Positions 890 to 43,990 of a stretch of DNA of 64,000 nt are shown here, piece after piece. Source of the stretch: Azolla caroliniana (lineage: Eukaryota; Plantae; Polypodiophyta); assembly GCA_043228905.1 (NCBI GenBank), contig JBHGNT010000012.1, forward strand, positions 15,066,001 to 15,130,000. Reading direction: 5' to 3'. The first letter of the stretch is position 1. Every line of letters starts with the position of its first letter. Under the pieces are notes generated by a model that was not told the origin of the DNA, searched no databases, and was given only the letters and a program-made list of their open reading frames with translations. The translations under genes and the position numbers were made by a program.

Positions 890-905
890 GCAAAAGGGGT
901 ATAAG

Positions 906-15069: not shown

Positions 15070-15123
15070 ACGTTGTTCTACTTTCTTAATTTGAGACGTG
15101 TACTCGTTATTGTAACGCAACAA

Positions 15124-16400: not shown

Positions 16401-16710
16401 ACCTTTGTTTCTCAAACAAGAGTCGTCGTTTAGCGGTTTTGGAATATGAAAATCATCGATGTACTTCACAAACCTCATTCAATAAGAGGATCCAGCCTTC
16501 ACTACATATCTAACATGCTTTACCTTAATTAACCTAGTTGGTATTCACTCTAACATGCATTGTGTGACCAAGTTTATGCGATTTTTGCGTATTTTGTGAT
16601 CATGGTGCCGCGGTGTAGTTTGTGACCATGCGACGGACCAACTTGAGTTATGCTACAGTACGTTGTTTTCTTGATTTGTGACGTTATTTCTCGTTGTTGT
16701 CATACATTAA

Positions 16711-16784
16711 GGTTTTGTGGTGTAGTTGGTGATCACGTTAGTCTCACACAATGAAGGTCTCCGGTTTGAGCCCGGATGAAACCA
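16711..16784 (+). pseudogene. Degenerate tRNA-Val(CAC)
   Basis: G-A mismatch in the anticodon stem; T loop TTTGAGC. Confidence 0.75.
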
Positions 16785-17691
16785 ATCTATGTTTCTCAAA
16801 CAACAATCATCGTTTAGTGGTTTTGGAATATTGAAATAAGGGATTCACCCCACAAACCTCATTTAAGAAGAGGATCCAGCCTTCACTACTTATTAGACCT
16901 GCTTGACGTGAATTAACCTAGTTGGCATTCACTCAAACATGCACCGTGTGACCTAGTTTATGCGATTTTACCTATTTTGTGATCGCATGACGCTAATATC
17001 CCGGCAGTCTCGAATTACAGAACGATGAAACAAACCCAGATTTACAACAGAGGACCCTAAATCCTAATTAGTTTTTCAATTATCCAAAATAACCCTTCAC
17101 ATCTATATGTACACCATATAGAATGATCCAATTTCTATACCAATTTTTTGACAGTGCATTTAATATTACTTATTCAATCATAGCATGTGAGATTTATTTT
17201 CTTCTTGTTTTGACATTTCCTTTTTACAAGAAATATTGTACACATAGAATTTTGACATGTTTGATGTTCTCTTTCGTCTAACGCATTTACAATTATCGTG
17301 TGATTCATGGATACGGTGTGAGTGGTAGTGCGTTCAATTCTTGGATTACCTCCGCTTTAATACGACCACGTAATTTAGTTGATAAGTGCATATCTTATCA
17401 TTGCGATCGCACCCTCGTCACGACATTTATTCTACCTCTTAAGAATATACTACTTTCGTAAGGTAATTTGCTCTAGTCGTATGATTCTCGCTCAGTATGG
17501 ACGTGGTCCTCAGGTCTATTTGGGAGCTCCCACTATTAATAATAGGGATAATCACACTTACGGTAGTAAAGTTCATAATAAACAGATTCGTTTGTTTTTC
17601 CAAAAACATGTAGGGGTAATAATTTAGATTCACATCTAATTCAATTCTTCACCAAAACCTCTATGGATGACCTTTTCTATGTATCCTTCGA

Positions 17692-17763
17692 GGGCATTTG
17701 GTCTAGTGGTATGATTCTCGCTTAGGGTGCGAGAGGTCTCGAGTTCAATTCTCGAAATGCCCC
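17692..17763 (+). tRNA. tRNA-Pro(AGG)
   Basis: Intact cloverleaf, HOR unit 1. Confidence 0.93.
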
Positions 17764-17960
17764 TCATACAATTATAGTAACAATAATGTCGACAATTCAA
17801 CATATTTACAATGTTCACAATTGTATTTCTACATGTTGGCGCACCAACGTGGTGTCACGGTGTAGTTTGTGATCATGTTACGAAGGATCTTGAATTTTCT
17901 TACTATACGTTGTTCTACTTTCTTAATTTGAGACGTGCACTCGTTGTTGTCATGCAACAA

Positions 17961-18034
17961 GGTTTCGTGGTGTAGTTGGTGATCACGTCAGTCTAACACA
18001 CTGAAGGTCTCCGGTTCGAGCCCGGACGAAGCCA
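17961..18034 (+). tRNA. tRNA-Val(AAC)
   Basis: Intact cloverleaf, CAACAA immediately upstream, HOR unit 1. Confidence 0.93.
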
Positions 18035-18538
18035 ACCTTTGTTTCTCAAACAAGAGTCGTCGTTTAGCGGTTTTGGAATATGAAAATCATCGATGTACTT
18101 CACAAACCTCATTCAATAAGAGGATCCAGCCTTCACTGCATATCTGACATGCTTTACGTGAATTAACCTAGTTGGTATTCACTCTAACATGCATTGTGTG
18201 ACCAAGTTTATGCGATTTTTGCGTATTTCGTGATCACATGACTCTAGCATGCCGACAGTATCGAATTAGAGACCGATGAAACAAACCCAGATTTACAATA
18301 GAGGATCCTAAATCCTAGTTAGTCTTTTAATTATCTAAAATAACCCTTCGCAACTACATATACACCATATACAATGATACAATTTCCATACCAATTTTGT
18401 GAGAGTGCATTTAATATTACTTATTCAATTAAACTATGTAAGATTTATTTTCTTCTTGTTTTGACATTTCCTTTTTACAAGAAATATTGTATACTTAGAA
18501 GTTTGACAAGTTTGATGTTCGCTTTCCTCTAACACATT

Positions 18539-18580
18539 TGAGGGTGCGATAGATGCCGAGTTCAATTCTCGGTATGCCCC
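18539..18580 (+). pseudogene. 3' half of the divergent tRNA-Pro (recurs every 3,294 bp)
   Basis: TGAGGGTGCGATAGATGCCGAGTTCAATTCTCGGTATGCCCC fused to upstream spacer by a deletion. Confidence 0.8.
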
Positions 18581-18786
18581 TCATAACAATTATACGAAGA
18601 ATAATGTTGATAATTCAACAAATCTACAATGTTCACAATTGTATTTCTACATGTTGGCGCATCAACATGTATTGCAACATGGTGCCGCGGGGTAGTTTGT
18701 GACCATGTGACGGACCAACTTGAGTTACCCTACAGTACGTTGTTTTCTTGATTTGTGACGTTATTCTCGTTGATGTCATACATTAG

Positions 18787-18860
18787 GGTTTCGTGGTGTA
18801 GTTGGTGATCACGTCAGTCTCACACACTGAAGGTCTCCGGTTCGAGCCCGGACGAAGCCA
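18787..18860 (+). tRNA. tRNA-Val(CAC), AAC-type body
   Basis: Identical to the Val(AAC) copy except the first anticodon base; HOR unit 1. Confidence 0.9.
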
Positions 18861-19725
18861 ACCTATGTTCCTCAAACAAGAGTCATCTTTTAGTGGTTTT
18901 GGAATATTGAAATAAGCGATTCAGTCCACAAACCCCGTTTAAAAAGAGGATCGAGCCTTCTGTACATATGTGACCTGCTTTACGTGAATTGACATGGTTG
19001 GCATTCACTCTAACATTCATTGTGTGATCTAGTTTATGCGATTTTTGCTACTTCGTGATCACATGACTCTTACATGCCGACAGTCTCGAATTCGAGACCG
19101 ATGAAACAAACCTAGATTTACAACAGAGGACCCTAAATCCTAGTTAGTCCTTCAATTTTCCAAAATAACCCTTCACGTCTATATATACACCATATACAAT
19201 GATACAATTTCCATACCAATTTTGTGAGAATGCATTTAATATTGCTTATTCAATTATACTACGTGAGATTTATTTTCTTCTTGGTTTGACATTTCCTTCT
19301 TACAAGAAATATTTTCCGCTTGATGTCCGCTATCCTTTAACGCATTTAGAATTATCGTGTGATTCATGGATACGGTGCGAGAGGTAGTGCGTTCAATTCT
19401 TGCATTGCCTCCGCTTTAATACGACACGTAATTTAGTTGATAAGTGCATATCTTATCATTGCGCACGCACCCTCATCAACAAATTTCTTCGGCCTCTTTA
19501 GAATTCACTACTTTTGTAAGGTAATTTGTTCTAATCGTCTGATTCTCGTTCAATGTGAAAGTGGTCCTCTCGGAATGCCCACTATTAATAATAGGGATAA
19601 CCACACTTACGGTAGTAGAGTTGATAATAAACAGATTTGTTTGTTTCTCCAAAAATAAGTAAGGGTAATAATTCAGATTCGCATCTAAATCAATTCTTCA
19701 CCAAAACCTTCATCTAGACTTTCGA

Positions 19726-19797
19726 GGGCATTTGTTCTAGTGGTATGATTCCCTCTGAGGGTGCGATAGATGCCGAGTTCAATTCTCGGTATGCCCC
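19726..19797 (+). pseudogene. Divergent tRNA-Pro pseudogene
   Basis: Broken anticodon stem, U33>G, T-T mismatch in the acceptor stem; B box intact. Confidence 0.8.
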
Positions 19798-20004
19798 TCG
19801 TAACAATTATACGAAGAATAACGTTGATAATTCAACAAATTTACAACGTTCACAATTGTATTTCTACATGCTGGCGCATCAACATGTATTGCAACATGGT
19901 GCCGCGGTGTAGTTTGTGACCATGCGACGGACCAACTTGAGTTATGCTACAGTACGTTGTTTTCTTGATTTGTGACGTTATTTCTCGTTGTTGTCATACA
20001 TTAA

Positions 20005-20078
20005 GGTTTTGTGGTGTAGTTGGTGATCACGTTAGTCTCACACAATGAAGGTCTCCGGTTTGAGCCCGGACGAAACCA
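20005..20078 (+). pseudogene. Degenerate tRNA-Val(CAC)
   Basis: Anticodon-stem mismatch, TTTGA T loop. Confidence 0.75.
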
Positions 20079-20985
20079 ATCTATGTTTCTCAAACAACAA
20101 TCATCGTTTAGTGGTTTTGGAATATTGAAATAAGGGATTCACCCCACAAACCTCATTTAAGAAGAGGATCCAGCCTTCACTACTTATTAGACCTGCTTGA
20201 CGTGAATTAACCTAGTTGGCATTCACTCAAACATGCACCGTGTGACCTAGTTTATGCGATTTTACCTATTTTGTGATCGCATGACGCTAATATCCCGGCA
20301 GTCTCGAATTACAGAACGATGAAACAAACCCAGATTTACAACAGAGGACCCTAAATCCTAATTAGTTTTTCAATTATCCAAAATAACCCTTCACATCTAT
20401 ATGTACACCATATAGAATGATCCAATTTCTATACCAATTTTTTGACAGTGCATTTAATATTACTTATTCAATCATAGCATGTGAGATTTATTTTCTTCTT
20501 GTTTTGACATTTCCTTTTTACAAGAAATATTGTACACATAGAATTTTGACATGTTTGATGTTCTCTTTCGTCTAACGCATTTACAATTATCGTGTGATTC
20601 ATGGATACGGTGTGAGTGGTAGTGCGTTCAATTCTTGGATTACCTCCGCTTTAATACGACCACGTAATTTAGTTGATAAGTGCATATCTTATCATTGCGA
20701 TCGCACCCTCGTCACGACATTTATTCTACCTCTTAAGAATATACTACTTTCGTAAGGTAATTTGCTCTAGTCGTATGATTCTCGCTCAGTATGGACGTGG
20801 TCCTCAGGTCTATTTGGGAGCTCCCACTATTAATAATAGGGATAATCACACTTACGGTAGTAAAGTTCATAATAAACAGATTCGTTTGTTTTTCCAAAAA
20901 CATGTAGGGGTAATAATTGAGATTGGCATCTAATTCAATTCTTCACCAAAACCTCTATGGATGACCTTTTCTTTGTATCCTTCGA

Positions 20986-21057
20986 GGGCATTTGGTCTAG
21001 TGGTATGATTCTCGCTTAGGGTGCGAGAGGTCTCGAGTTCAATTCTCGAAATGCCCC
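20986..21057 (+). tRNA. tRNA-Pro(AGG)
   Basis: HOR unit 2 copy. Confidence 0.93.
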
Positions 21058-21254
21058 TCATACAATTATAGTAACAATAATGTCGACAATTCAACATATT
21101 TACAATGTTCACAATTGTATTTCTACATGTTGGCGCACCAACGTGGTGTCACGGTGTAGTTTGTGATCATGTTACGAAGGATCTTGAATTTTCTTACTAT
21201 ACGTTGTTCTACTTTCTTAATTTGAGACGTGCACTCGTTGTTGTCATGCAACAA

Positions 21255-21328
21255 GGTTTCGTGGTGTAGTTGGTGATCACGTCAGTCTAACACACTGAAG
21301 GTCTCCGGTTCGAGCCCGGACGAAGCCA
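21255..21328 (+). tRNA. tRNA-Val(AAC)
   Basis: HOR unit 2 copy. Confidence 0.93.
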
Positions 21329-22080
21329 ACCTTTGTTTCTCAAACAAGAGTCGTCGTTTAGCGGTTTTGGAATATGAAAATCATCGATGTACTTCACAAA
21401 CCTCATTCAATAAGAGGATCCAGCCTTCACTGCATATCTGACATGCTTTACGTGAATTAACCTAGTTGGTATTCACTCTAACATGCATTGTGTGACCAAG
21501 TTTATGCGATTTTTGCGTATTTCGTGATCACATGACTCTAGCATGCCGGCAGTATCGAATTAGAGACCGATGAAACAAACCCAGATTTACAATAGAGGAT
21601 CCTAAATCCTAGTTAGTCTTTTAATTATCTAAAATAACCCTTCGCAACTACATATACACCATATACAATGATACAATTTCCATACCAATTTTGTGAGAGT
21701 GCATTTAATATTACTTATTCAATTAAACTATGTAAGATTTATTTTCTTCTTGTTTTGACATTTCCTTTTTACAAGAAATATTGTATACTTAGAAGCTTGA
21801 CAAGTTTGATGTTCGCTTTCCTCTAACACATTTGAGGGTGCGATAGATGCCGAGTTCAATTCTCGGTATGCCCCTCATAACAATTATACGAAGAATAATG
21901 TTGATAATTCAACAAATCTACAATGTTCACAATTGTATTTCTACATGTTGGCGCATCAACATGTATTGCAACATGGTGCCGCGGGGTAGTTTGTGACCAT
22001 GTGACGGACCAACTTGAGTTACCCTACAGTACGTTGTTTTCTTGATTTGTGACGTTATTCTCGTTGATGTCATACATTAG

Positions 22081-22154
22081 GGTTTCGTGGTGTAGTTGGT
22101 GATCACGTCAGTCTCACACACTGAAGGTCTCCGGTTCGAGCCCGGACGAAGCCA
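22081..22154 (+). tRNA. tRNA-Val(CAC)
   Basis: HOR unit 2 copy. Confidence 0.9.
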
Positions 22155-23019
22155 ACCTATGTTCCTCAAACAAGAGTCATCTTTTAGTGGTTTTGGAATA
22201 TTGAAATAAGCGATTCAGTCCACAAACCCCGTTTAAAAAGAGGATCGAGCCTTCTGTACATATGTGACCTGCTTTACGTGAATTGACATGGTTGGCATTC
22301 ACTCTAACATTCATTGTGTGATCTAGTTTATGCGATTTTTGCTACTTCGTGATCACATGACTCTTACATGCCGACAGTCTCGAATTCGAGACCGATGAAA
22401 CAAACCTAGATTTACAACAGAGGACCCTAAATCCTAGTTAGTCCTTCAATTTTCCAAAATAACCCTTCACGTCTATATATACACCATATACAATGATACA
22501 ATTTCCATACCAATTTTGTGAGAATGCATTTAATATTGCTTATTCAATTATACTACGTGAGATTTATTTTCTTCTTGGTTTGACATTTCCTTCTTACAAG
22601 AAATATTTTCCGCTTGATGTCCGCTATCCTTTAACGCATTTAGAATTATCGTGTGATTCATGGATACGGTGCGAGAGGTAGTGCGTTCAATTCTTGCATT
22701 GCCTCCGCTTTAATACGACACGTAATTTAGTTGATAAGTGCATATCTTATCATTGCGCACGCACCCTCATCAACAAATTTCTTCGGCCTCTTTAGAATTC
22801 ACTACTTTTGTAAGGTAATTTGTTCTAATCGTCTGATTCTCGTTCAATGTGAAAGTGGTCCTCTCGGAATGCCCACTATTAATAATAGGGATAACCACAC
22901 TTACGGTAGTAGAGTTGATAATAAACAGATTTGTTTGTTTCTCCAAAAATAAGTAAGGGTAATAATTCAGATTCGCATCTAAATCAATTCTTCACCAAAA
23001 CCTTCATCTAGACTTTCGA

Positions 23020-23091
23020 GGGCATTTGTTCTAGTGGTATGATTCCCGCTGAGGGTGCGATAGATGCCGAGTTCAATTCTCGGTATGCCCC
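23020..23091 (+). pseudogene. Divergent tRNA-Pro pseudogene
   Basis: HOR unit 2 copy. Confidence 0.8.
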
Positions 23092-23298
23092 TCGTAACAA
23101 TTATACGAAGAATAATGTTGATAATTCAACAAATTTACAACGTTCACAATTGTATTTCTACATGCTGGCGCATCAACATGTATTGCAACATGGTGCCGCG
23201 GTGTAGTTTGTGACCATGCGACGGACCAACTTGAGTTATGCTACAGTACGTTGTTTTCTTGATTTGTGACGTTATTTCTCGTTGTTGTCATACATTAA

Positions 23299-23372
23299 GG
23301 TTTTGTGGTGTAGTTGGTGATCACGTTAGTCTCACACAATGAAGGTCTCCGGTTTGAGCCCGGACGAAACCA
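23299..23372 (+). pseudogene. Degenerate tRNA-Val(CAC)
   Basis: HOR unit 2 copy. Confidence 0.75.
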
Positions 23373-24279
23373 ATCTATGTTTCTCAAACAACAATCATCG
23401 TTTAGTGGTTTTGGAATATTGAAATAAGGGATTCACCCCACAAACCTCATTTAAGAAGAGGATCCAGCCTTCACTACTTATTAGACCTGCTTGACGTGAA
23501 TTAACCTAGTTGGCATTCACTCAAACATGCACCGTGTGACCTAGTTTATGCGATTTTACCTATTTTGTGATCGCATGACGCTAATATCCCGGCAGTCTCG
23601 AATTACAGAACGATGAAACAAACCCAGATTTACAACAGAGGACCCTAAATCCTAATTAGTTTTTCAATTATCCAAAATAACCCTTCACATCTATATGTAC
23701 ACCATATAGAATGATCCAATTTCTATACCAATTTTTTGACAGTGCATTTAATATTACTTATTCAATCATAGCATGTGAGATTTATTTTCTTCTTGTTTTG
23801 ACATTTCCTTTTTACAAGAAATATTGTACACATAGAATTTTGACATGTTTGATGTTCTCTTTCGTCTAACGCATTTACAATTATCGTGTGATTCATGGAT
23901 ACGGTGTGAGTGGTAGTGCGTTCAATTCTTGGATTACCTCCGCTTTAATACGACCACGTAATTTAGTTGATAAGTGCATATCTTATCATTGCGATCGCAC
24001 CCTCGTCACGACATTTATTCTACCTCTTAAGAATATACTACTTTCGTAAGGTAATTTGCTCTAGTCGTATGATTCTCGCTCAGTATGGACGTGGTCCTCG
24101 GGTCTATTTGGGAGCTCCCACTATTAATAATAGGGATAATCACACTTACGGTAGTAAAGTTCATAATAAACAGATTCGTTTGTTTTTCCAAAAACATGTA
24201 GGGGTAATAATTGAGATTGGCATCTAATTCAATTCTTCACCAAAACCTCTATGGATGACCTTTTCTTTGTATCCTTCGA

Positions 24280-24351
24280 GGGCATTTGGTCTAGTGGTAT
24301 GATTCTCGCTTAGGGTGCGAGAGGTCTCGAGTTCAATTCTCGAAATGCCCC
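24280..24351 (+). tRNA. tRNA-Pro(AGG)
   Basis: HOR unit 3 copy. Confidence 0.93.
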
Positions 24352-24548
24352 TCATACAATTATAGTAACAATAATGTCGACAATTCAACATATTTACAAT
24401 GTTCACAATTGTATTTCTACATGTTGGCGCACCAACGTGGTGTCACGGTGTAGTTTGTGATCATGTTACGAAGGATCTTGAATTTTCTTACTATACGTTG
24501 TTCTACTTTCTTAATTTGAGACGTGCACTCGTTGTTGTCATGCAACAA

Positions 24549-24622
24549 GGTTTCGTGGTGTAGTTGGTGATCACGTCAGTCTAACACACTGAAGGTCTCC
24601 GGTTCGAGCCCGGACGAAGCCA
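24549..24622 (+). tRNA. tRNA-Val(AAC)
   Basis: HOR unit 3 copy. Confidence 0.93.
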
Positions 24623-25374
24623 ACCTTTGTTTCTCAAACAAGAGTCGTCGTTTAGCGGTTTTGGAATATGAAAATCATCGATGTACTTCACAAACCTCAT
24701 TCAATAAGAGGATCCAGCCTTCACTGCATATCTGACATGCTTTACGTGAATTAACCTAGTTGGTATTCACTCTAACATGCATTGTGTGACCAAGTTTATG
24801 CGATTTTTGCGTATTTCGTGATCACATGACTCTAGCATGCCGGCAGTATCGAATTAGAGACCGATGAAACAAACCCAGATTTACAATAGAGGATCCTAAA
24901 TCCTAGTTAGTCTTTTAATTATCTAAAATAACCCTTCGCAACTACATATACACCATATACAATGATACAATTTCCATACCAATTTTGTGAGAGTGCATTT
25001 AATATTACTTATTCAATTAAACTATGTAAGATTTATTTTCTTCTTGTTTTGACATTTCCTTTTTACAAGAAATATTGTATACTTAGAAGCTTGACAAGTT
25101 TGATGTTCGCTTTCCTCTAACACATTTGAGGGTGCGATAGATGCCGAGTTCAATTCTCGGTATGCCCCTCATAACAATTATACGAAGAATAATGTTGATA
25201 ATTCAACAAATCTACAATGTTCACAATTGTATTTCTACATGTTGGCGCATCAACATGTATTGCAACATGGTGCCGCGGGGTAGTTTGTGACCATGTGACG
25301 GACCAACTTGAGTTACCCTACAGTACGTTGTTTTCTTGATTTGTGACGTTATTCTCGTTGATGTCATACATTAG

Positions 25375-25448
25375 GGTTTCGTGGTGTAGTTGGTGATCAC
25401 GTCAGTCTCACACACTGAAGGTCTCCGGTTCGAGCCCGGACGAAGCCA
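25375..25448 (+). tRNA. tRNA-Val(CAC)
   Basis: HOR unit 3 copy. Confidence 0.9.
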
Positions 25449-26313
25449 ACCTATGTTCCTCAAACAAGAGTCATCTTTTAGTGGTTTTGGAATATTGAAA
25501 TAAGCGATTCAGTCCACAAACCCCGTTTAAAAAGAGGATCGAGCCTTCTGTACATATGTGACCTGCTTTACGTGAATTGACATGGTTGGCATTCACTCTA
25601 ACATTCATTGTGTGATCTAGTTTATGCGATTTTTGCTACTTCGTGATCACATGACTCTTACATGCCGACAGTCTCGAATTCGAGACCGATGAAACAAACC
25701 TAGATTTACAACAGAGGACCCTAAATCCTAGTTAGTCCTTCAATTTTCCAAAATAACCCTTCACGTCTATATATACACCATATACAATGATACAATTTCC
25801 ATACCAATTTTGTGAGAATGCATTTAATATTGCTTATTCAATTATACTACGTGAGATTTATTTTCTTCTTGGTTTGACATTTCCTTCTTACAAGAAATAT
25901 TTTCCGCTTGATGTCCGCTATCCTTTAACGCATTTAGAATTATCGTGTGATTCATGGATACGGTGCGAGAGGTAGTGCGTTCAATTCTTGCATTGCCTCC
26001 GCTTTAATACGACACGTAATTTAGTTGATAAGTGCATATCTTATCATTGCGCACGCACCCTCATCAACAAATTTCTTCGGCCTCTTTAGAATTCACTACT
26101 TTTGTAAGGTAATTTGTTCTAATCGTCTGATTCTCGTTCAATGTGAAAGTGGTCCTCTCGGAATGCCCACTATTAATAATAGGGATAACCACACTTACGG
26201 TAGTAGAGTTGATAATAAACAGATTTGTTTGTTTCTCCAAAAATAAGTAAGGGTAATAATTCAGATTCGCATCTAAATCAATTCTTCACCAAAACCTTCA
26301 TCTAGACTTTCGA

Positions 26314-26385
26314 GGGCATTTGTTCTAGTGGTATGATTCCCGCTGAGGGTGCGATAGATGCCGAGTTCAATTCTCGGTATGCCCC
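26314..26385 (+). pseudogene. Divergent tRNA-Pro pseudogene
   Basis: HOR unit 3 copy. Confidence 0.8.
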
Positions 26386-33254: not shown

Positions 33255-34161
33255 ATCTATGTTTCTCAAACAACAATCATCGTTTAGTGGTTTTGGAATA
33301 TTGAAATAAGGGATTCACCCCACAAACCTCATTTAAGAAGAGGATCCAGCCTTCACTACTTATTAGACCTGCTTGACGTGAATTAACCTAGTTGGCATTC
33401 ACTCAAACATGCACCGTGTGACCTAGTTTATGCGATTTTACCTATTTTGTGATCGCATGACGCTAATATCCCGGCAGTCTCGAATTACAGAACGATGAAA
33501 CAAACCCAGATTTACAACAGAGGACCCTAAATCCTAATTAGTTTTTCAATTATCCAAAATAACCCTTCACATCTATATGTACACCATATAGAATGATCCA
33601 ATTTCTATACCAATTTTTTGACAGTGCATTTAATATTACTTATTCAATCATAGCATGTGAGATTTATTTTCTTCTTGTTTTGACATTTCCTTTTTACAAG
33701 AAATATTGTACACATAGAATTTTGACATGTTTGATGTTCTCTTTCGTCTAACGCATTTACAATTATCGTGTGATTCATGGATACGGTGTGAGTGGTAGTG
33801 CGTTCAATTCTTGGATTACCTCCGCTTTAATACGACCACGTAATTTAGTTGATAAGTGCATATCTTATCATTGCGATCGCACCCTCGTCACGACATTTAT
33901 TCTACCTCTTAAGAATATACTACTTTCGTAAGGTAATTTGCTCTAGTCGTATGATTCTCGCTCAGTATGGACGTGGTCCTCGGGTCTATTTGGGAGCTCC
34001 CACTATTAATAATAGGGATAATCACACTTACGGTAGTAAAGTTCATAATAAACAGATTCGTTTGTTTTTCCAAAAACATGTAGGGGTAATAATTGAGATT
34101 GGCATCTAATTCAATTCTTCACCAAAACCTCTATGGATGACCTTTTCTTTGTATCCTTCGA

Positions 34162-34233
34162 GGGCATTTGGTCTAGTGGTATGATTCTCGCTTAGGGTGC
34201 GAGAGGTCTCGAGTTCAATTCTCGAAATGCCCC
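34162..34233 (+). tRNA. tRNA-Pro(AGG)
   Basis: HOR unit 6 copy. Confidence 0.93.
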
Positions 34234-34430
34234 TCATACAATTATAGTAACAATAATGTCGACAATTCAACATATTTACAATGTTCACAATTGTATTTCT
34301 ACATGTTGGCGCACCAACGTGGTGTCACGGTGTAGTTTGTGATCATGTTACGAAGGATCTTGAATTTTCTTACTATACGTTGTTCTACTTTCTTAATTTG
34401 AGACGTGCACTCGTTGTTGTCATGCAACAA

Positions 34431-34504
34431 GGTTTCGTGGTGTAGTTGGTGATCACGTCAGTCTAACACACTGAAGGTCTCCGGTTCGAGCCCGGACGAA
34501 GCCA
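34431..34504 (+). tRNA. tRNA-Val(AAC)
   Basis: HOR unit 6 copy. Confidence 0.93.
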
Positions 34505-35256
34505 ACCTTTGTTTCTCAAACAAGAGTCGTCGTTTAGCGGTTTTGGAATATGAAAATCATCGATGTACTTCACAAACCTCATTCAATAAGAGGATCCAGC
34601 CTTCACTGCATATCTGACATGCTTTACGTGAATTAACCTAGTTGGTATTCACTCTAACATGCATTGTGTGACCAAGTTTATGCGATTTTTGCGTATTTCG
34701 TGATCACATGACTCTAGCATGCCGACAGTATCGAATTAGAGACCGATGAAACAAACCCAGATTTACAATAGAGGATCCTAAATCCTAGTTAGTCTTTTAA
34801 TTATCTAAAATAACCCTTCGCAACTACATATACACCATATACAATGATACAATTTCCATACCAATTTTGTGAGAGTGCATTTAATATTACTTATTCAATT
34901 AAACTATGTAAGATTTATTTTCTTCTTGTTTTGACATTTCCTTTTTACAAGAAATATTGTATACTTAGAAGCTTGACAAGTTTGATGTTCGCTTTCCTCT
35001 AACACATTTGAGGGTGCGATAGATGCCGAGTTCAATTCTCGGTATGCCCCTCATAACAATTATACGAAGAATAATGTTGATAATTCAACAAATCTACAAT
35101 GTTCACAATTGTATTTCTACATGTTGGCGCATCAACATGTATTGCAACATGGTGCCGCGGGGTAGTTTGTGACCATGTGACGGACCAACTTGAGTTACCC
35201 TACAGTACGTTGTTTTCTTGATTTGTGACGTTATTCTCGTTGATGTCATACATTAG

Positions 35257-35330
35257 GGTTTCGTGGTGTAGTTGGTGATCACGTCAGTCTCACACACTGA
35301 AGGTCTCCGGTTCGAGCCCGGACGAAGCCA
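35257..35330 (+). tRNA. tRNA-Val(CAC)
   Basis: HOR unit 6 copy. Confidence 0.9.
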
Positions 35331-36195
35331 ACCTATGTTCCTCAAACAAGAGTCATCTTTTAGTGGTTTTGGAATATTGAAATAAGCGATTCAGTCCACA
35401 AACCCCGTTTAAAAAGAGGATCGAGCCTTCTGTACATATGTGACCTGCTTTACGTGAATTGACATGGTTGGCATTCACTCTAACATTCATTGTGTGATCT
35501 AGTTTATGCGATTTTTGCTACTTCGTGATCACATGACTCTTACATGCCGACAGTCTCGAATTCGAGACCGATGAAACAAACCTAGATTTACAACAGAGGA
35601 CCCTAAATCCTAGTTAGTCCTTCAATTTTCCAAAATAACCCTTCACGTCTATATATACACCATATACAATGATACAATTTCCATACCAATTTTGTGAGAA
35701 TGCATTTAATATTGCTTATTCAATTATACTACGTGAGATTTATTTTCTTCTTGGTTTGACATTTCCTTCTTACAAGAAATATTTTCCGCTTGATGTCCGC
35801 TATCCTTTAACGCATTTAGAATTATCGTGTGATTCATGGATACGGTGCGAGAGGTAGTGCGTTCAATTCTTGCATTGCCTCCGCTTTAATACGACACGTA
35901 ATTTAGTTGATAAGTGCATATCTTATCATTGCGCACGCACCCTCATCAACAAATTTCTTCGGCCTCTTTAGAATTCACTACTTTTGTAAGGTAATTTGTT
36001 CTAATCGTCTGATTCTCGTTCAATGTGAAAGTGGTCCTCTCGGAATGCCCACTATTAATAATAGGGATAACCACACTTACGGTAGTAGAGTTGATAATAA
36101 ACAGATTTGTTTGTTTCTCCAAAAATAAGTAAGGGTAATAATTCAGATTCGCATCTAAATCAATTCTTCACCAAAACCTTCATCTAGACTTTCGA

Positions 36196-36267
36196 GGGCA
36201 TTTGTTCTAGTGGTATGATTCCCTCTGAGGGTGCGATAGATGCCGAGTTCAATTCTCGGTATGCCCC
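36196..36267 (+). pseudogene. Divergent tRNA-Pro pseudogene
   Basis: HOR unit 6 copy. Confidence 0.8.
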
Positions 36268-36474
36268 TCGTAACAATTATACGAAGAATAATGTTGATAA
36301 TTCAACAAATTTACAACGTTCACAATTGTATTTCTACATGCTGGCGCATCAACATGTATTGCAACATGGTGCCGCGGTGTAGTTTGTGACCATGCGACGG
36401 ACCAACTTGAGTTATGCTACAGTACGTTGTTTTCTTGATTTGTGACGTTATTTCTCGTTGTTGTCATACATTAA

Positions 36475-36548
36475 GGTTTTGTGGTGTAGTTGGTGATCAC
36501 GTTAGTCTCACACAATGAAGGTCTCCGGTTTGAGCCCGGACGAAACCA
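36475..36548 (+). pseudogene. Degenerate tRNA-Val(CAC)
   Basis: HOR unit 6 copy. Confidence 0.75.
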
Positions 36549-37455
36549 ATCTATGTTTCTCAAACAACAATCATCGTTTAGTGGTTTTGGAATATTGAAA
36601 TAAGGGATTCACCCCACAAACCTCATTTAAGAAGAGGATCCAGCCTTCACTACTTATTAGACCTGCTTGACGTGAATTAACCTAGTTGGCATTCACTCAA
36701 ACATGCACCGTGTGACCTAGTTTATGCGATTTTACCTATTTTGTGATCGCATGACGCTAATATCCCGGCAGTCTCGAATTACAGAACGATGAAACAAACC
36801 CAGATTTACAACAGAGGACCCTAAATCCTAATTAGTTTTTCAATTATCCAAAATAACCCTTCACATCTATATGTACACCATATAGAATGATCCAATTTCT
36901 ATACCAATTTTTTGACAGTGCATTTAATATTACTTATTCAATCATAGCATGTGAGATTTATTTTCTTCTTGTTTTGACATTTCCTTTTTACAAGAAATAT
37001 TGTACACATAGAATTTTGACATGTTTGATGTTCTCTTTCGTCTAACGCATTTACAATTATCGTGTGATTCATGGATACGGTGTGAGTGGTAGTGCGTTCA
37101 ATTCTTGGATTACCTCCGCTTTAATACGACCACGTAATTTAGTTGATAAGTGCATATCTTATCATTGCGATCGCACCCTCGTCACGACATTTATTCTACC
37201 TCTTAAGAATATACTACTTTCGTAAGGTAATTTGCTCTAGTCGTATGATTCTCGCTCAGTATGGACGTGGTCCTCGGGTCTATTTGGGAGCTCCCACTAT
37301 TAATAATAGGGATAATCACACTTACGGTAGTAAAGTTCATAATAAACAGATTCGTTTGTTTTTCCAAAAACATGTAGGGGTAATAATTGAGATTGGCATC
37401 TAATTCAATTCTTCACCAAAACCTCTATGGATGACCTTTTCTTTGTATCCTTCGA

Positions 37456-37527
37456 GGGCATTTGGTCTAGTGGTATGATTCTCGCTTAGGGTGCGAGAGG
37501 TCTCGAGTTCAATTCTCGAAATGCCCC
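37456..37527 (+). tRNA. tRNA-Pro(AGG)
   Basis: HOR unit 7 copy. Confidence 0.93.
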
Positions 37528-37724
37528 TCATACAATTATAGTAACAATAATGTCGACAATTCAACATATTTACAATGTTCACAATTGTATTTCTACATGT
37601 TGGCGCACCAACGTGGTGTCACGGTGTAGTTTGTGATCATGTTACGAAGGATCTTGAATTTTCTTACTATACGTTGTTCTACTTTCTTAATTTGAGACGT
37701 GCACTCGTTGTTGTCATGCAACAA

Positions 37725-37798
37725 GGTTTCGTGGTGTAGTTGGTGATCACGTCAGTCTAACACACTGAAGGTCTCCGGTTCGAGCCCGGACGAAGCCA
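37725..37798 (+). tRNA. tRNA-Val(AAC)
   Basis: HOR unit 7 copy. Confidence 0.93.
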
Positions 37799-38550
37799 AC
37801 CTTTGTTTCTCAAACAAGAGTCGTCGTTTAGCGGTTTTGGAATATGAAAATCATCGATGTACTTCACAAACCTCATTCAATAAGAGGATCCAGCCTTCAC
37901 TGCATATCTGACATGCTTTACGTGAATTAACCTAGTTGGTATTCACTCTAACATGCATTGTGTGACCAAGTTTATGCGATTTTTGCGTATTTCGTGATCA
38001 CATGACTCTAGCATGCCGACAGTATCGAATTAGAGACCGATGAAACAAACCCAGATTTACAATAGAGGATCCTAAATCCTAGTTAGTCTTTTAATTATCT
38101 AAAATAACCCTTCGCAACTACATATACACCATATACAATGATACAATTTCCATACCAATTTTGTGAGAGTGCATTTAATATTACTTATTCAATTAAACTA
38201 TGTAAGATTTATTTTCTTCTTGTTTTGACATTTCCTTTTTACAAGAAATATTGTATACTTAGAAGCTTGACAAGTTTGATGTTCGCTTTCCTCTAACACA
38301 TTTGAGGGTGCGATAGATGCCGAGTTCAATTCTCGGTATGCCCCTCATAACAATTATACGAAGAATAATGTTGATAATTCAACAAATCTACAATGTTCAC
38401 AATTGTATTTCTACATGTTGGCGCATCAACATGTATTGCAACATGGTGCCGCGGGGTAGTTTGTGACCATGTGACGGACCAACTTGAGTTACCCTACAGT
38501 ACGTTGTTTTCTTGATTTGTGACGTTATTCTCGTTGATGTCATACATTAG

Positions 38551-38624
38551 GGTTTCGTGGTGTAGTTGGTGATCACGTCAGTCTCACACACTGAAGGTCT
38601 CCGGTTCGAGCCCGGACGAAGCCA
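38551..38624 (+). tRNA. tRNA-Val(CAC)
   Basis: HOR unit 7 copy. Confidence 0.9.
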
Positions 38625-39489
38625 ACCTATGTTCCTCAAACAAGAGTCATCTTTTAGTGGTTTTGGAATATTGAAATAAGCGATTCAGTCCACAAACCCC
38701 GTTTAAAAAGAGGATCGAGCCTTCTGTACATATGTGACCTGCTTTACGTGAATTGACATGGTTGGCATTCACTCTAACATTCATTGTGTGATCTAGTTTA
38801 TGCGATTTTTGCTACTTCGTGATCACATGACTCTTACATGCCGACAGTCTCGAATTCGAGACCGATGAAACAAACCTAGATTTACAACAGAGGACCCTAA
38901 ATCCTAGTTAGTCCTTCAATTTTCCAAAATAACCCTTCACGTCTATATATACACCATATACAATGATACAATTTCCATACCAATTTTGTGAGAATGCATT
39001 TAATATTGCTTATTCAATTATACTACGTGAGATTTATTTTCTTCTTGGTTTGACATTTCCTTCTTACAAGAAATATTTTCCGCTTGATGTCCGCTATCCT
39101 TTAACGCATTTAGAATTATCGTGTGATTCATGGATACGGTGCGAGAGGTAGTGCGTTCAATTCTTGCATTGCCTCCGCTTTAATACGACACGTAATTTAG
39201 TTGATAAGTGCATATCTTATCATTGCGCACGCACCCTCATCAACAAATTTCTTCGGCCTCTTTAGAATTCACTACTTTTGTAAGGTAATTTGTTCTAATC
39301 GTCTGATTCTCGTTCAATGTGAAAGTGGTCCTCTCGGAATGCCCACTATTAATAATAGGGATAACCACACTTACGGTAGTAGAGTTGATAATAAACAGAT
39401 TTGTTTGTTTCTCCAAAAATAAGTAAGGGTAATAATTCAGATTCGCATCTAAATCAATTCTTCACCAAAACCTTCATCTAGACTTTCGA

Positions 39490-39561
39490 GGGCATTTGTT
39501 CTAGTGGTATGATTCCCTCTGAGGGTGCGATAGATGCCGAGTTCAATTCTCGGTATGCCCC
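39490..39561 (+). pseudogene. Divergent tRNA-Pro pseudogene
   Basis: HOR unit 7 copy. Confidence 0.8.
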
Positions 39562-39768
39562 TCGTAACAATTATACGAAGAATAATGTTGATAATTCAAC
39601 AAATTTACAACGTTCACAATTGTATTTCTACATGCTGGCGCATCAACATGTATTGCAACATGGTGCCGCGGTGTAGTTTGTGACCATGCGACGGACCAAC
39701 TTGAGTTATGCTACAGTACGTTGTTTTCTTGATTTGTGACGTTATTTCTCGTTGTTGTCATACATTAA

Positions 39769-39842
39769 GGTTTTGTGGTGTAGTTGGTGATCACGTTAGT
39801 CTCACACAATGAAGGTCTCCGGTTTGAGCCCGGACGAAACCA
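39769..39842 (+). pseudogene. Degenerate tRNA-Val(CAC)
   Basis: HOR unit 7 copy. Confidence 0.75.
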
Positions 39843-40749
39843 ATCTATGTTTCTCAAACAACAATCATCGTTTAGTGGTTTTGGAATATTGAAATAAGGG
39901 ATTCACCCCACAAACCTCATTTAAGAAGAGGATCCAGCCTTCACTACTTATTAGACCTGCTTGACGTGAATTAACCTAGTTGGCATTCACTCAAACATGC
40001 ACCGTGTGACCTAGTTTATGCGATTTTACCTATTTTGTGATCGCATGACGCTAATATCCCGGCAGTCTCGAATTACAGAACGATGAAACAAACCCAGATT
40101 TACAACAGAGGACCCTAAATCCTAATTAGTTTTTCAATTATCCAAAATAACCCTTCACATCTATATGTACACCATATAGAATGATCCAATTTCTATACCA
40201 ATTTTTTGACAGTGCATTTAATATTACTTATTCAATCATAGCATGTGAGATTTATTTTCTTCTTGTTTTGACATTTCCTTTTTACAAGAAATATTGTACA
40301 CATAGAATTTTGACATGTTTGATGTTCTCTTTCGTCTAACGCATTTACAATTATCGTGTGATTCATGGATACGGTGTGAGTGGTAGTGCGTTCAATTCTT
40401 GGATTACCTCCGCTTTAATACGACCACGTAATTTAGTTGATAAGTGCATATCTTATCATTGCGATCGCACCCTCGTCACGACATTTATTCTACCTCTTAA
40501 GAATATACTACTTTCGTAAGGTAATTTGCTCTAGTCGTATGATTCTCGCTCAGTATGGACGTGGTCCTCGGGTCTATTTGGGAGCTCCCACTATTAATAA
40601 TAGGGATAATCACACTTACGGTAGTAAAGTTCATAATAAACAGATTCGTTTGTTTTTCCAAAAACATGTAGGGGTAATAATTGAGATTGGCATCTAATTC
40701 AATTCTTCACCAAAACCTCTATGGATGACCTTTTCTTTGTATCCTTCGA

Positions 40750-40821
40750 GGGCATTTGGTCTAGTGGTATGATTCTCGCTTAGGGTGCGAGAGGTCTCGA
40801 GTTCAATTCTCGAAATGCCCC
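40750..40821 (+). tRNA. tRNA-Pro(AGG)
   Basis: HOR unit 8 copy. Confidence 0.93.
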
Positions 40822-41018
40822 TCATACAATTATAGTAACAATAATGTCGACAATTCAACATATTTACAATGTTCACAATTGTATTTCTACATGTTGGCGC
40901 ACCAACGTGGTGTCACGGTGTAGTTTGTGATCATGTTACGAAGGATCTTGAATTTTCTTACTATACGTTGTTCTACTTTCTTAATTTGAGACGTGCACTC
41001 GTTGTTGTCATGCAACAA

Positions 41019-41092
41019 GGTTTCGTGGTGTAGTTGGTGATCACGTCAGTCTAACACACTGAAGGTCTCCGGTTCGAGCCCGGACGAAGCCA
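41019..41092 (+). tRNA. tRNA-Val(AAC)
   Basis: HOR unit 8 copy. Confidence 0.93.
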
Positions 41093-41844
41093 ACCTTTGT
41101 TTCTCAAACAAGAGTCGTCGTTTAGCGGTTTTGGAATATGAAAATCATCGATGTACTTCACAAACCTCATTCAATAAGAGGATCCAGCCTTCACTGCATA
41201 TCTGACATGCTTTACGTGAATTAACCTAGTTGGTATTCACTCTAACATGCATTGTGTGACCAAGTTTATGCGATTTTTGCGTATTTCGTGATCACATGAC
41301 TCTAGCATGCCGACAGTATCGAATTAGAGACCGATGAAACAAACCCAGATTTACAATAGAGGATCCTAAATCCTAGTTAGTCTTTTAATTATCTAAAATA
41401 ACCCTTCGCAACTACATATACACCATATACAATGATACAATTTCCATACCAATTTTGTGAGAGTGCATTTAATATTACTTATTCAATTAAACTATGTAAG
41501 ATTTATTTTCTTCTTGTTTTGACATTTCCTTTTTACAAGAAATATTGTATACTTAGAAGCTTGACAAGTTTGATGTTCGCTTTCCTCTAACACATTTGAG
41601 GGTGCGATAGATGCCGAGTTCAATTCTCGGTATGCCCCTCATAACAATTATACGAAGAATAATGTTGATAATTCAACAAATCTACAATGTTCACAATTGT
41701 ATTTCTACATGTTGGCGCATCAACATGTATTGCAACATGGTGCCGCGGGGTAGTTTGTGACCATGTGACGGACCAACTTGAGTTACCCTACAGTACGTTG
41801 TTTTCTTGATTTGTGACGTTATTCTCGTTGATGTCATACATTAG

Positions 41845-41918
41845 GGTTTCGTGGTGTAGTTGGTGATCACGTCAGTCTCACACACTGAAGGTCTCCGGTT
41901 CGAGCCCGGACGAAGCCA
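41845..41918 (+). tRNA. tRNA-Val(CAC)
   Basis: HOR unit 8 copy. Confidence 0.9.
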
Positions 41919-42783
41919 ACCTATGTTCCTCAAACAAGAGTCATCTTTTAGTGGTTTTGGAATATTGAAATAAGCGATTCAGTCCACAAACCCCGTTTAA
42001 AAAGAGGATCGAGCCTTCTGTACATATGTGACCTGCTTTACGTGAATTGACATGGTTGGCATTCACTCTAACATTCATTGTGTGATCTAGTTTATGCGAT
42101 TTTTGCTACTTCGTGATCACATGACTCTTACATGCCGACAGTCTCGAATTCGAGACCGATGAAACAAACCTAGATTTACAACAGAGGACCCTAAATCCTA
42201 GTTAGTCCTTCAATTTTCCAAAATAACCCTTCACGTCTATATATACACCATATACAATGATACAATTTCCATACCAATTTTGTGAGAATGCATTTAATAT
42301 TGCTTATTCAATTATACTACGTGAGATTTATTTTCTTCTTGGTTTGACATTTCCTTCTTACAAGAAATATTTTCCGCTTGATGTCCGTTATCCTTTAACG
42401 CATTTAGAATTATCGTGTGATTCATGGATACGGTGCGAGAGGTAGTGCGTTCAATTCTTGCATTGCCTCCGCTTTAATACGACACGTAATTTAGTTGATA
42501 AGTGCATATCTTATCATTGCGCACGCACCCTCATCAACAAATTTCTTCGGCCTCTTTAGAATTCACTACTTTTGTAAGGTAATTTGTTCTAATCGTCTGA
42601 TTCTCGTTCAATGTGAAAGTGGTCCTCTCGGAATGCCCACTATTAATAATAGGGATAACCACACTTACGGTAGTAGAGTTGATAATAAACAGATTTGTTT
42701 GTTTCTCCAAAAATAAGTAAGGGTAATAATTCAGATTCGCATCTAAATCAATTCTTCACCGAAACCTTCATCTAGACTTTCGA

Positions 42784-42855
42784 GGGCATTTGTTCTAGTG
42801 GTATGATTCCCGCTGAGGGTGCGATAGATGCCGAGTTCAATTCTCGGTATGCCCC
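42784..42855 (+). pseudogene. Divergent tRNA-Pro pseudogene
   Basis: HOR unit 8 copy. Confidence 0.8.
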
Positions 42856-43062
42856 TCGTAACAATTATACGAAGAATAATGTTGATAATTCAACAAATTT
42901 ACAACGTTCACAATTGTATTTCTACATGCTGGCGCATCAACATGTATTGCAACATGGTGCCGCGGTGTAGTTTGTGACCATGCGACGGACCAACTTGAGT
43001 TATGCTACAGTACGTTGTTTTCTTGATTTGTGACGTTATTTCTCGTTGTTGTCATACATTAA

Positions 43063-43136
43063 GGTTTTGTGGTGTAGTTGGTGATCACGTTAGTCTCACA
43101 CAATGAAGGTCTCCGGTTTGAGCCCGGACGAAACCA
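43063..43136 (+). pseudogene. Degenerate tRNA-Val(CAC)
   Basis: HOR unit 8 copy. Confidence 0.75.
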
Positions 43137-43990
43137 ATCTATGTTTCTCAAACAACAATCATCGTTTAGTGGTTTTGGAATATTGAAATAAGGGATTCAC
43201 CCCACAAACCTCATTTAAGAAGAGGATCCAGCCTTCACTACTTATTAGACCTGCTTGACGTGAATTAACCTAGTTGGCATTCACTCAAACATGCACCGTG
43301 TGACCTAGTTTATGCGATTTTACCTATTTTGTGATCGCATGACGCTAATATCCCGGCAGTCTCGAATTACAGAACGATGAAACAAACCCAGATTTACAAC
43401 AGAGGACCCTAAATCCTAATTAGTTTTTCAATTATCCAAAATAACCCTTCACATCTATATGTACACCATATAGAATGATCCAATTTCTATACCAATTTTT
43501 TGACAGTGCATTTAATATTACTTATTCAATCATAGCATGTGAGATTTATTTTCTTCTTGTTTTGACATTTCCTTTTTACAAGAAATATTGTACACATAGA
43601 ATTTTGACATGTTTGATGTTCTCTTTCGTCTAACGCATTTACAATTATCGTGTGATTCATGGATACGGTGTGAGTGGTAGTGCGTTCAATTCTTGGATTA
43701 CCTCCGCTTTAATACGACCACGTAATTTAGTTGATAAGTGCATATCTTATCATTGCGATCGCACCCTCGTCACGACATTTATTCTACCTCTTAAGAATAT
43801 ACTACTTTCGTAAGGTAATTTGCTCTAGTCGTATGATTCTCGCTCAGTATGGACGTGGTCCTCAGGTCTATTTGGGAGCTCCCACTATTAATAATAGGGA
43901 TAATCACACTTACGGTAGTAAAGTTCATAATAAACAGATTCGTTTGTTTATCTAAAAATATGTAAGGGTAATAATTGAGATTGGCATCTA

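Follow-up and report, generated by a model that had tools for sequence, protein, structure and literature searches.

A higher-order tandem array of tRNA-Pro and tRNA-Val genes in the fern Azolla caroliniana

Analysis of a 64,000-nucleotide stretch of the Azolla caroliniana genome (the window; contig JBHGNT010000012.1) identified a tandem array on the forward strand at 16601..43990, in which a 3,294-bp unit is repeated head-to-tail 8.31 times (eight complete copies and a further 1,038 bp). The locus is very probably a Pro/Val 'heterocluster' of nuclear Pol III tRNA genes arranged in tandem, which expanded through recurrent unequal exchange among its own repeat copies. The anatomy of the array, the constraint on its genes and the concerted evolution of its units were observed directly. 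Unequal crossing-over would be the mechanism of growth, and the eight-fold copy number most likely reflects neutral drift rather than adaptation.

Organization of the array and its repeat unit

Comparison of the window with itself gave an identity of 0.9988 at a lag of 3294 and of approximately 0.27 at neighbouring lags, with the lag-3294 matching run extending from 16601 to 40696+3294 = 43990 with no indels. The initial annotation had described a block of about 8.3 near-identical 3,294-bp units, and this was confirmed (99.88% identity, zero indels). Alignment of the units showed 19 variable columns, with none lying within the intact genes. Distances between successive Val genes inside the array (ARAGORN) were 826, 1218 and 1250 bp, which supports the earlier view of a higher-order unit built from three diverged Pro-Val monomers of these lengths. 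The spacers of these monomers are 12-15% apart, while interior units differ by only about 0.1%; the pattern is that of a satellite higher-order repeat and agrees with the suggestion of a recent amplification, the units having been amplified or homogenised recently.

At the left junction of the array (16590..16612, + strand), sequence of M1 type (offset ~545) was found by alignment to be joined to sequence of M3 type (offset ~170) with 2-5 bp of microhomology. The right boundary (43991..44416) consists of unrelated DNA with AACCGAACC / GGTTCGGTT inverted repeats (I7, I8, I10), which in the alignment starts 54 bp upstream of the expected start of the next Pro gene.

tRNA genes, pseudogenes and constraint

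Within the array block, 36 tRNA-like genes were predicted with ARAGORN, all on the + strand, comprising eight Pro(AGG), eight Val(AAC), 17 Val(CAC) and three 'Leu(GAG)', the last being the pseudo-Pro of the three units having G at unit offset 3153. Scores with the Rfam tRNA model were 55.9 bits for Pro, 60.3 for Val(AAC) and 61.6 for the Val(CAC) at 18787. Neither the pseudo-Pro (19726) nor the second Val(CAC) (at 20005 and in its copies) reached E<=10. A search of the whole window at the Rfam gathering threshold returned Pro genes only; the absence of Val genes at that threshold is a filter effect, as laxer filters recovered them. Each unit was thus found to hold an intact Pro(AGG), Val(AAC) and Val(CAC), together with one dead gene each of Val(CAC) and Pro and half of a Pro, and the earlier count of 24 intact genes in the core (three per unit) was upheld by both ARAGORN and the Rfam model.

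In the reference unit, monomer M1 (17692..18508, +), the short form, contains an intact Pro(AGG) (17692-17763) and an intact Val(AAC) (17961-18034), each recurring at 3,294-bp intervals in eight copies. Monomer M2 (18509..19725, +) contains the 3' half of a Pro (18541-18580) and an intact Val(CAC) (18787-18860, eight copies) whose sole difference from Val(AAC) is A34C; from the monomer alignment, it appears to carry a deletion of approximately 430 bp relative to M3. Monomer M3 (19726..20985, +) contains a pseudo-Pro (19726-19797) changed at 10 of 72 positions, a decayed Val(CAC) (20005-20078) changed at five of 74, among them the T-loop change C56T in the B box and one mismatch in the anticodon stem, and two old Pro-like relics (20577-20644 and 20760-20814). 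Spacers were also found to hold tRNA-like relics (blastn-short E 2e-9 to 3e-3), and the presence of older Pro-like and Val-like relics inside the monomer indicates that duplication took place at three nested levels.

The Pro and Val genes that score between 55.9 and 61.6 bits encode cytosolic-type tRNA bodies with intact A and B boxes, and would be transcribable. Agreement with the angiosperm cytosolic consensus extends to 70 of 72 positions in Pro and 71 of 74 in Val(AAC), with the remaining differences preserving base pairs (49:65 is U-A here for both, compared with C-G for Pro and U.G for Val in angiosperms). The Val(AAC) body with A34C, that is Val(CAC), is a combination absent from five angiosperm tRNA sets. 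A recent anticodon switch from Val(AAC) to Val(CAC) was rejected: between M1 and M2 the spacers have diverged by 14.5% and the genes differ at the anticodon alone (1/74; p = 2e-4), indicating that the switch is old and has been maintained.

Similarly, none of the 72 sites of Pro vary among four copies, whereas their spacers vary at 13% (Fisher p = 9e-5). The M3 genes, in contrast, could not be distinguished from the spacer rate (p = 0.08-0.5), and M3 Pro and Val are dead passengers that decay neutrally. Conversion limited to the genes is an unlikely cause of the conservation, since the sequence immediately 5' and 3' of the conserved genes differs among the old monomers. Purifying selection has thus preserved Pro(AGG), Val(AAC) and Val(CAC) without change, which would make them working genes now or until recently. 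This evidence of selection covers the older history of the monomers and is silent on the importance of the recent eight-fold amplification. A sliding conservation profile across the monomers was flat at 0.8-0.95, and no conserved non-tRNA block was found in the spacers.

The surrounding cluster and concerted evolution

Old monomers related to the unit were identified with blastn both left and right of the array, which forms the young centre of a more ancient Pro-Val cluster extending over approximately 4827-58464. The older monomers to the left (11267..16600, +) share 80-90% identity with the unit when it is compared with the flanks by blastn, and carry tRNAs identified by ARAGORN at 11545, 12794, 13039, 14019, 15124, 16058 and 16327; the last of these monomers (16058-16600) has 98% identity to M1. 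An 829-bp insertion (14241..15069) with a 7-bp duplication, ACGTTGT, at both sides lies between the Pro and Val of one old monomer. A Ty1/copia retrotransposon fragment (6063..11266, -) is inserted into the old cluster and was identified from RVT_2 (E 1.7e-71) with integrase and gag-like ORFs; no LTR pair was found. It separates off an outlying Pro-Val monomer (4827..6062, +; blastn with the unit), of which the Pro at 5334 is identical to that of the array (72/72) and the Val at 5578 matches array Val(AAC) at 71 of 74 positions. To the right, the oldest Pro-Val monomers (54892..58464, +) are CpG-depleted and show 67-83% identity to the unit, with Pro at 57075 and 58338 (blastn, ARAGORN). An amino-acid transporter gene of at least four exons (Aa_trans, Pfam PF01490; 47727..50690, +) begins 3.7 kb beyond the right end of the array and was recognised from four ORFs covering profile positions 3-409. 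It is followed by a possible two-exon gene of LEA_2 / NHL type (52628..54001, -), with weak PF03168 matches (E 5e-4 and 4e-3) that lie under the curated cut-off. An exon of the transporter gene and the copia RT, searched for relatives, gave no narrower placement than Streptophyta and a best named hit in the fern Adiantum at 57%; the closest hits were metagenome contigs.

An independent contig, L002 (ENA ERZ1034427), was found to have 99.2-99.35% identity to every unit of the array. Ten differences from this contig are fixed in all units of the window, and C41A of M3 Val occurs in nine of nine window copies and is absent from L002; the units therefore evolve in concert. The edge unit (unit 0) carries eight private variants whose alleles match L002, so these alleles are ancestral, and derived alleles are common to the interior units. 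At offsets 911, 1654 and 3153 all four allele combinations are present among the units, as would result from exchange between them. A single-copy locus differed by 0.6% between the window and a contig from a sibling sample (L006, ERZ1034435), similar to the divergence of L002. Coverage of L002 was 13x, compared with 1.3-1.9x for single-copy plant contigs from other samples of the same series; no recorded gene was found among the ORFs of L002, so the approximately ten-fold excess rests on sibling samples. This only hints that the unit is multi-copy in the second sample, and the copy number in the window is that of one assembly.

The cluster shows three layers of growth. The first consists of Pro-like and Val-like sub-units of great age, which survive as relics of 63-75% identity. 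The second is a monomer of approximately 1.25 kb with one Pro and one Val, the copies of which now have spacers 7-17% apart. The third is a trimer of this monomer, copied or homogenised eight times, with interior copies about 0.1% apart. New variants spread among the interior units, with edge units lagging behind.

Activity of the array and alternative readings

CpG observed/expected was 1.06 for the unit, 0.92 for the old left monomers and 0.52-0.56 for adjacent unique DNA. The excess of transitions at CpG was 1.5-1.7-fold, although this measure discriminates poorly, the copia pair in the window reaching only 2.35-fold. Both values weakly suggest low methylation. Within 63-282 bp downstream of the Pro genes there is no stretch of at least four T, which is unusual for efficient Pol III termination, and the CAACAA motif found immediately 5' of the Val(AAC) genes is missing from M2 Val(CAC). 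Dicistronic Pro-Val transcription, considered on account of the missing Pro terminators, was rejected as a general feature, as most monomers have their first T4 run ahead of Val, at positions that are not conserved.

A realistic possibility, somewhat short of probable, is that the array is a silenced surplus cluster, with intact genes held in repressive, methylated chromatin, contributing little or nothing to the tRNA pool and possibly being reactivated in some tissues. Such a state has been documented in the closest plant analogues, the Pro and Ser-Tyr-Tyr clusters of Arabidopsis (PMC7544208, PMC12308677), and it is consistent with the retrotransposons that flank the locus, with the lack of nearby terminators at the Pro genes and with the dead M3 Val, in which four changes are C-to-T or G-to-A, two of them at CpG. 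Purifying selection on three genes per unit throughout the divergence of the monomers speaks against it, as do the CpG ratios and transition excess, which are unlike those of long-term germline methylation, weak as this signal is given the copia pair. An active, germline-hypomethylated gene bank resembling rDNA, whose homogenised units would supply a large share of the plant's tRNA-Pro(AGG), Val(AAC) and Val(CAC), appears unlikely.

It is quite doubtful that the eight-fold amplification was selected for a higher dosage of these three tRNAs. The 24 intact genes are identical in sequence and constrained, and the unit is seemingly multi-copy in the second sample, but every unit also carries two dead genes and approximately 3 kb of spacer, and the copy number of comparable arrays is reported to fluctuate under drift (PMC2886086). 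There is a similarly low chance that the unit is real and its 8.3 copies were inflated or collapsed by the assembler. Units that are 99.9% identical across 27 kb are hard to resolve; however, the variants that distinguish them form a non-trivial pattern, the edge unit is diverged, the array has an exact period and clean junctions, and the coverage excess of L002 comes from an independent short-read contig.

A role as a chromatin or boundary element, in which TFIIIC/Pol III binding would create an insulator or nuclear-positioning domain without acting through the tRNAs, is highly improbable. Boundary activity has been associated with tRNA genes and with the human 1q23.3 tRNA repeat (PMC4041453), and the array sits between retrotransposons and two protein-coding genes, but constraint spans the full tRNA body, with pair-preserving changes, beyond the A and B boxes, and the spacers hold no conserved block of their own. 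The likeness to centromeric satellites drawn by the initial annotation holds for the pattern of monomer and unit identity only; a centromere-type satellite, expected to occupy hundreds of kb to Mb of gene-poor, centromeric or pericentromeric DNA, was rejected for an array of 27.4 kb and only 8.3 units that lies 3.7 kb from a transporter gene. A tRNA-derived SINE or other mobile element, expected to be dispersed with target-site duplications and a LINE-type or A-rich tail, was also rejected, as the copies adjoin each other directly, with neither duplications nor tails, and everything related to them in the window belongs to one locus.

Relation to known tRNA clusters

The preferred reading, a tandem tRNA heterocluster, fits the description of tDNA clusters as at least five tRNA genes in 5 kb (PMC13437025). 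Six genes supported by the covariance model lie within 4.46 kb (17692-22154), the units, spacers included, are arranged head-to-tail on the same strand at 99.88% identity, and the fixed differences and four allele combinations point to concerted evolution or unequal crossing-over among them. The initial annotation knew of no Pro-Val cluster with such monomer-to-higher-order organization; the literature search turned up no Pro-Val tRNA repeat unit, but repeat units of several tRNA genes that arose by earlier internal duplication and evolve in concert have already been described in Arabidopsis (Ser-Tyr-Tyr; PMC2886086), at human 1q23.3 (7.3 kb; PMC4041453), in Entamoeba (PMC2652664) and in Ceratodon (Val-Glu-Phe; PMC12652284).

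The Ser-Tyr-Tyr array on chromosome 1 of Arabidopsis thaliana (27 triplet units of ~1.5 kb) shares with the present array a three-gene head-to-tail unit, an earlier internal duplication, concerted evolution within a lineage and pseudogene copies, and its expansion has been attributed to unequal crossing-over (PMC2886086, PMC7544208). The Azolla array differs in combining Pro with Val, in its 3.3-kb unit with long relic-bearing spacers and in its approximately eight, far more uniform copies; moreover, the Arabidopsis array has been shown to be silenced and methylated, a state that the Pro-Val array may or may not share. Pro is the commonest tandem tRNA isotype in plants, and the Pro homoclusters of Arabidopsis and many dicots likewise consist of tandem genes near or within protein-coding regions (PMC13437025, PMC12652284). 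These contain Pro only, with short spacing, and are reported to have well-conserved downstream terminators, whereas the Pro genes of the array have no T4 run within 63-282 bp. The Val-Glu-Phe and Ala-Leu modules of Ceratodon purpureus provide a parallel of mixed isotypes in a non-seed land plant, with copies that are 100% identical (PMC12652284), but combine other isotypes, and no hierarchy of diverged monomers within the unit has been described there. The human 1q23.3 variable-number tandem repeat (9-43 copies) resembles the array in its kb-scale multi-tRNA unit repeated approximately ten-fold (PMC4041453); it is GC-rich and binds CTCF, and its copy-number polymorphism has been demonstrated, whereas polymorphism is only hinted at for the Pro-Val array. 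The maize satellite tRNASAT_ZM is likewise a tRNA gene turned tandem repeat (PMC10335936); the Pro-Val array keeps three constrained, intact genes per unit.

The locus is therefore a well-preserved new example of the known plant tandem tRNA clusters, and neither a new type of structure nor a new mechanism. According to recent surveys, in which ferns have barely been sampled, land-plant tRNA genes are mostly dispersed, with few compact clusters (Pro, Ser-Tyr and a handful of others) (PMC13437025, PMC13578239). With this locus, a non-model plant provides a Pro/Val heterocluster in which all stages of array growth are found together and selected genes are separated from dead weight within one unit, with a second public sample that documents concerted evolution directly. 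It is thus suited to asking if tRNA gene clusters other than those of Arabidopsis are in use or silenced, and at what rate such arrays turn over.

Structure of the array and its tRNA gene content

Comparison of the window with itself identified a tandem block at positions 16601–43990 (the array), which matched itself with 99.88% identity when displaced by 3,294 bases and with approximately 27% at neighbouring displacements, the match running from 16601 to 43990 without insertion or deletion. It was found to consist of eight complete units plus 1,038 bases. Using ARAGORN, 36 tRNA-like genes were identified inside the array, all 36 on the + strand, with successive Val genes spaced at 826, 1218 and 1250 bp. 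The Rfam tRNA covariance model gave 55.9 bits for Pro(AGG), 60.3 bits for Val(AAC) and 61.6 bits for the Val(CAC) at 18787; neither the pseudo-Pro (19726) nor the other Val(CAC) (20005) reached E<=10. Three genes per unit, or 24 in the core, are therefore considered intact. Application of the Rfam gathering threshold to the whole window returned Pro genes only, the absence of Val being a filter effect.

The initial annotation had described a satellite-like array of approximately 8.3 units of 3,294 bp, each built of three diverged monomers of 826, 1218 and 1250 bp, with 24 intact genes in its core. The self-comparison and tRNA gene prediction that it recommended reproduced this period with sharp periodicity and clean ends, together with its copy count, monomer spacings and number of intact genes.

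In the reference unit (17692–20985), the first monomer, M1 (17692–18508), was found to carry an intact Pro(AGG) and Val(AAC), the second, M2 (18509–19725), the 3’ half of a Pro gene (18541–18580) and an intact Val(CAC), and the third, M3 (19726–20985), a dead Pro and a dead Val(CAC). As judged from the monomer alignment, M1 is short due to the loss of approximately 430 bp, together with the 5’ half of the M2 Pro gene. Changes were found at 10 of the 72 positions of the M3 Pro and at 5 of the 74 positions of the M3 Val, the latter including the invariant T-loop C56 (in the B box) and a mismatch in the anticodon stem. The spacers of the three monomers differ pairwise by 12–15%. They also contain tRNA-like relics with 63–86% identity to the genes, namely two Pro-like pieces preceding every Pro gene, a fragment of the 5’ part of Val preceding every Val gene and another Val-like piece downstream. 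The occurrence of relics within spacers, of diverged monomers and of a repeated unit indicates three nested rounds of duplication at this locus.

Constraint on the intact genes and origin of Val(CAC)

Among four copies of the Pro gene (5334, 12794, 16058 and 17692) none of the 72 positions was variable, while their spacers are variable at 13% of sites (Fisher p = 9e-5). Likewise, M1 and M2 carry Val genes that differ at the first anticodon base alone, with spacers 14.5% apart (p = 2e-4). In comparison of M3 with M1, both Pro (p = 0.5) and Val (p = 0.08) had diverged at the spacer rate. Conversion tracts limited to the gene could also keep genes identical, but this is unlikely to be the cause, since the bases directly flanking the conserved genes vary between old monomers. 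Set against tRNAs from five angiosperms (supplement of PMC12652284), the array Pro was found to have a compensated pair at 49:65 (C-G in the angiosperms, U-A here), and the array Val a U.G pair changed to U-A plus differences at two loop positions. Such sequence conservation and pairing changes are the marks expected of tRNAs maintained in a working state.

Val(CAC) at 18787–18860 and its copies, as well as that at 15124–15197, possess the body of Val(AAC) with A34C as the only difference. The Val(AAC) anticodon arm occurs many times with AAC in the five angiosperm sets and was absent from them with CAC; the Val(CAC) of the array is therefore a Val(AAC) gene with a shifted anticodon. As the remainder of the gene is unchanged despite the divergence of the spacer, this shift is old and maintained. 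C34 occurs in both M2 and M3 and also in an old monomer that groups, by its spacers, with AAC-type monomers, indicating that the change either arose twice or was moved by conversion.

Homogenisation of the units and the surrounding older cluster

Nineteen variable columns were identified among the units of the array, with eight variants private to the leftmost unit and approximately three differing sites per pair (0.1%) among interior units. Between copies the mature tRNAs do not differ, so that they are not assignable to one locus. For three sites the full set of four allele combinations was present, a sign of exchange between units. When public metagenome contigs were scanned for a 30-base string taken from the Pro gene’s 3’ end, a single contig was identified, L002 (ENA ERZ1034427, 1,997 bp), which spans the dead Val, Pro and Val(AAC) with 99.2–99.35% identity to every unit. 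It belongs to an ENA metagenome series, with sibling contigs L006 (ERZ1034435) and L001 (ERZ1034417), containing low-coverage DNA of the same plant or a very close relative (99.3–99.4%).

Ten fixed differences separate L002 from the window, with all eight window units in agreement. At three sites the alleles seemingly private to the leftmost unit match L002 and are therefore ancestral, the interior units sharing derived bases. The Pro and Val(AAC) of L002 are identical to those of the window, and its dead Val lacks only C41A, which was present in nine of nine window copies. On L006, a segment of the nearby transporter gene, present in single copy, was 99.4% identical to the window. Ordinary DNA thus differs by approximately 0.6% between sources, as against 0.1% among array copies in one genome, a pattern of textbook concerted evolution. 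The assembler coverage of L002 (13.1, against 1.3–1.9 for single-copy plant contigs of sibling samples) hints that its source also has roughly 7–10 collapsed copies, though this excess is only suggestive as the compared contigs come from different samples.

Older monomers matching the unit were identified to the left of the array at 11267–16600 (80–90% identity), the last of them (16058–16600) being 98% identical to M1, with an outlying monomer at 4827–6062 (77–94%). Further older monomers lie to the right at 54892–58464 (67–83%), beyond approximately 11 kb of other DNA containing an amino-acid transporter gene (47727–50690) and a possible LEA_2-type gene. A copia fragment (6063–11266) divides the left part of the old cluster and a gypsy element is situated at the right end of the window. 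The array therefore forms the young centre of an older cluster, situated among both genes and transposons, and is not a centromere-like block.

At its left edge, M1-type sequence is joined to M3-type sequence at non-equivalent positions with a few bases of microhomology. The right edge adjoins a block (43991–44600) with several inverted repeats (AACCGAACC; AACCGAACCGAACC / GGTTCGGTTCGGTT), which may be a small terminal-inverted-repeat transposon.

Several other features were observed in these surroundings. Two copia fragments (1–4300 and 6100–11266), approximately 85% identical and in opposite orientation, lie on either side of the monomer at 4827–6062. Sequence matches and plant telomere-type repeats placed the source no more precisely than Streptophyta, and the best named retrotransposon match was to a fern, at 57%. 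An 829-bp insertion (14241–15069) with a 7-bp target-site duplication (ACGTTGT) separates the Pro and Val genes of one old monomer; it occurs once in the window, gave no match in Rfam and contains, close to its left end, a short hairpin sequence resembling a tRNA T-arm. ARAGORN called a tRNA-Arg(ACG) at 11545–11616, at the Pro position of an old monomer, but its body is of Pro type (68/72 against the array Pro, with anticodon AGG changed to ACG) and it probably represents a copy in decay. Four copies of an 87-bp repeat, each containing the plant telomere-type unit TTTAGGG three times, are situated at 54225–54567, between the LEA_2-like gene and the oldest Pro-Val monomers. At 46090–46448, a tandem repeat of 69 bp was found in 5.2 copies with 99% identity; RING-finger and thiolase Pfam matches in its frame were dismissed as spurious and low-complexity, no domain being individually significant.

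Transcription signals, methylation history and known tRNA clusters

The Val genes are followed by TTTT at +28 or +37, and CAACAA lies immediately upstream of the Val(AAC) copies and was absent upstream of the Val genes of M2 and M3. For the Pro genes no four-T run was found for 63–282 bp downstream, the first such run falling at a non-conserved position. This counts against efficient Pol III termination of the Pro genes; terminator signals are described as weaker outside angiosperms (PMC13437025). Observed/expected CpG was 1.06 for the unit and 0.92 for the old left monomers, with 0.52–0.56 for both the oldest monomers on the right and the unique DNA alongside. Transitions at CpG were 1.5–1.7 times those at other C/G sites, the copia pair in the window giving 2.35-fold. 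These figures lean weakly towards low long-term methylation of the array.

The nearest analogue is the Arabidopsis Ser-Tyr-Tyr array, whose three-gene unit derives from an internal duplication and was multiplied through unequal crossing-over, with concerted evolution among the copies (PMC2886086); this array is silenced via DNA methylation (PMC7544208) and reactivated in the root tip (PMC12308677). The commonest plant tRNA clusters are Pro homoclusters (PMC13437025, PMC12652284), and multi-isotype modules are found in the moss Ceratodon (PMC12652284), a tRNA satellite of 92 kb in maize (PMC10335936), a 7.3 kb tRNA repeat at human 1q23.3 (PMC4041453) and arrays of nearly all tRNA genes in Entamoeba (PMC2652664). 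No description of a Pro-Val unit was found in the literature searched. The novelty proposed in the initial annotation is overstated, three-gene units from internal duplication being already known (PMC2886086).

Judged on its sequence, the locus is a predicted tandem Pol III tRNA gene cluster shaped by concerted evolution and, probably, by unequal exchange, in which three genes per unit are kept by selection and two are dead. The Pro-Val array thus belongs to an already known class of tandem tRNA clusters, within which it stands out through a clean hierarchy of three levels and direct evidence of both constraint and homogenisation.
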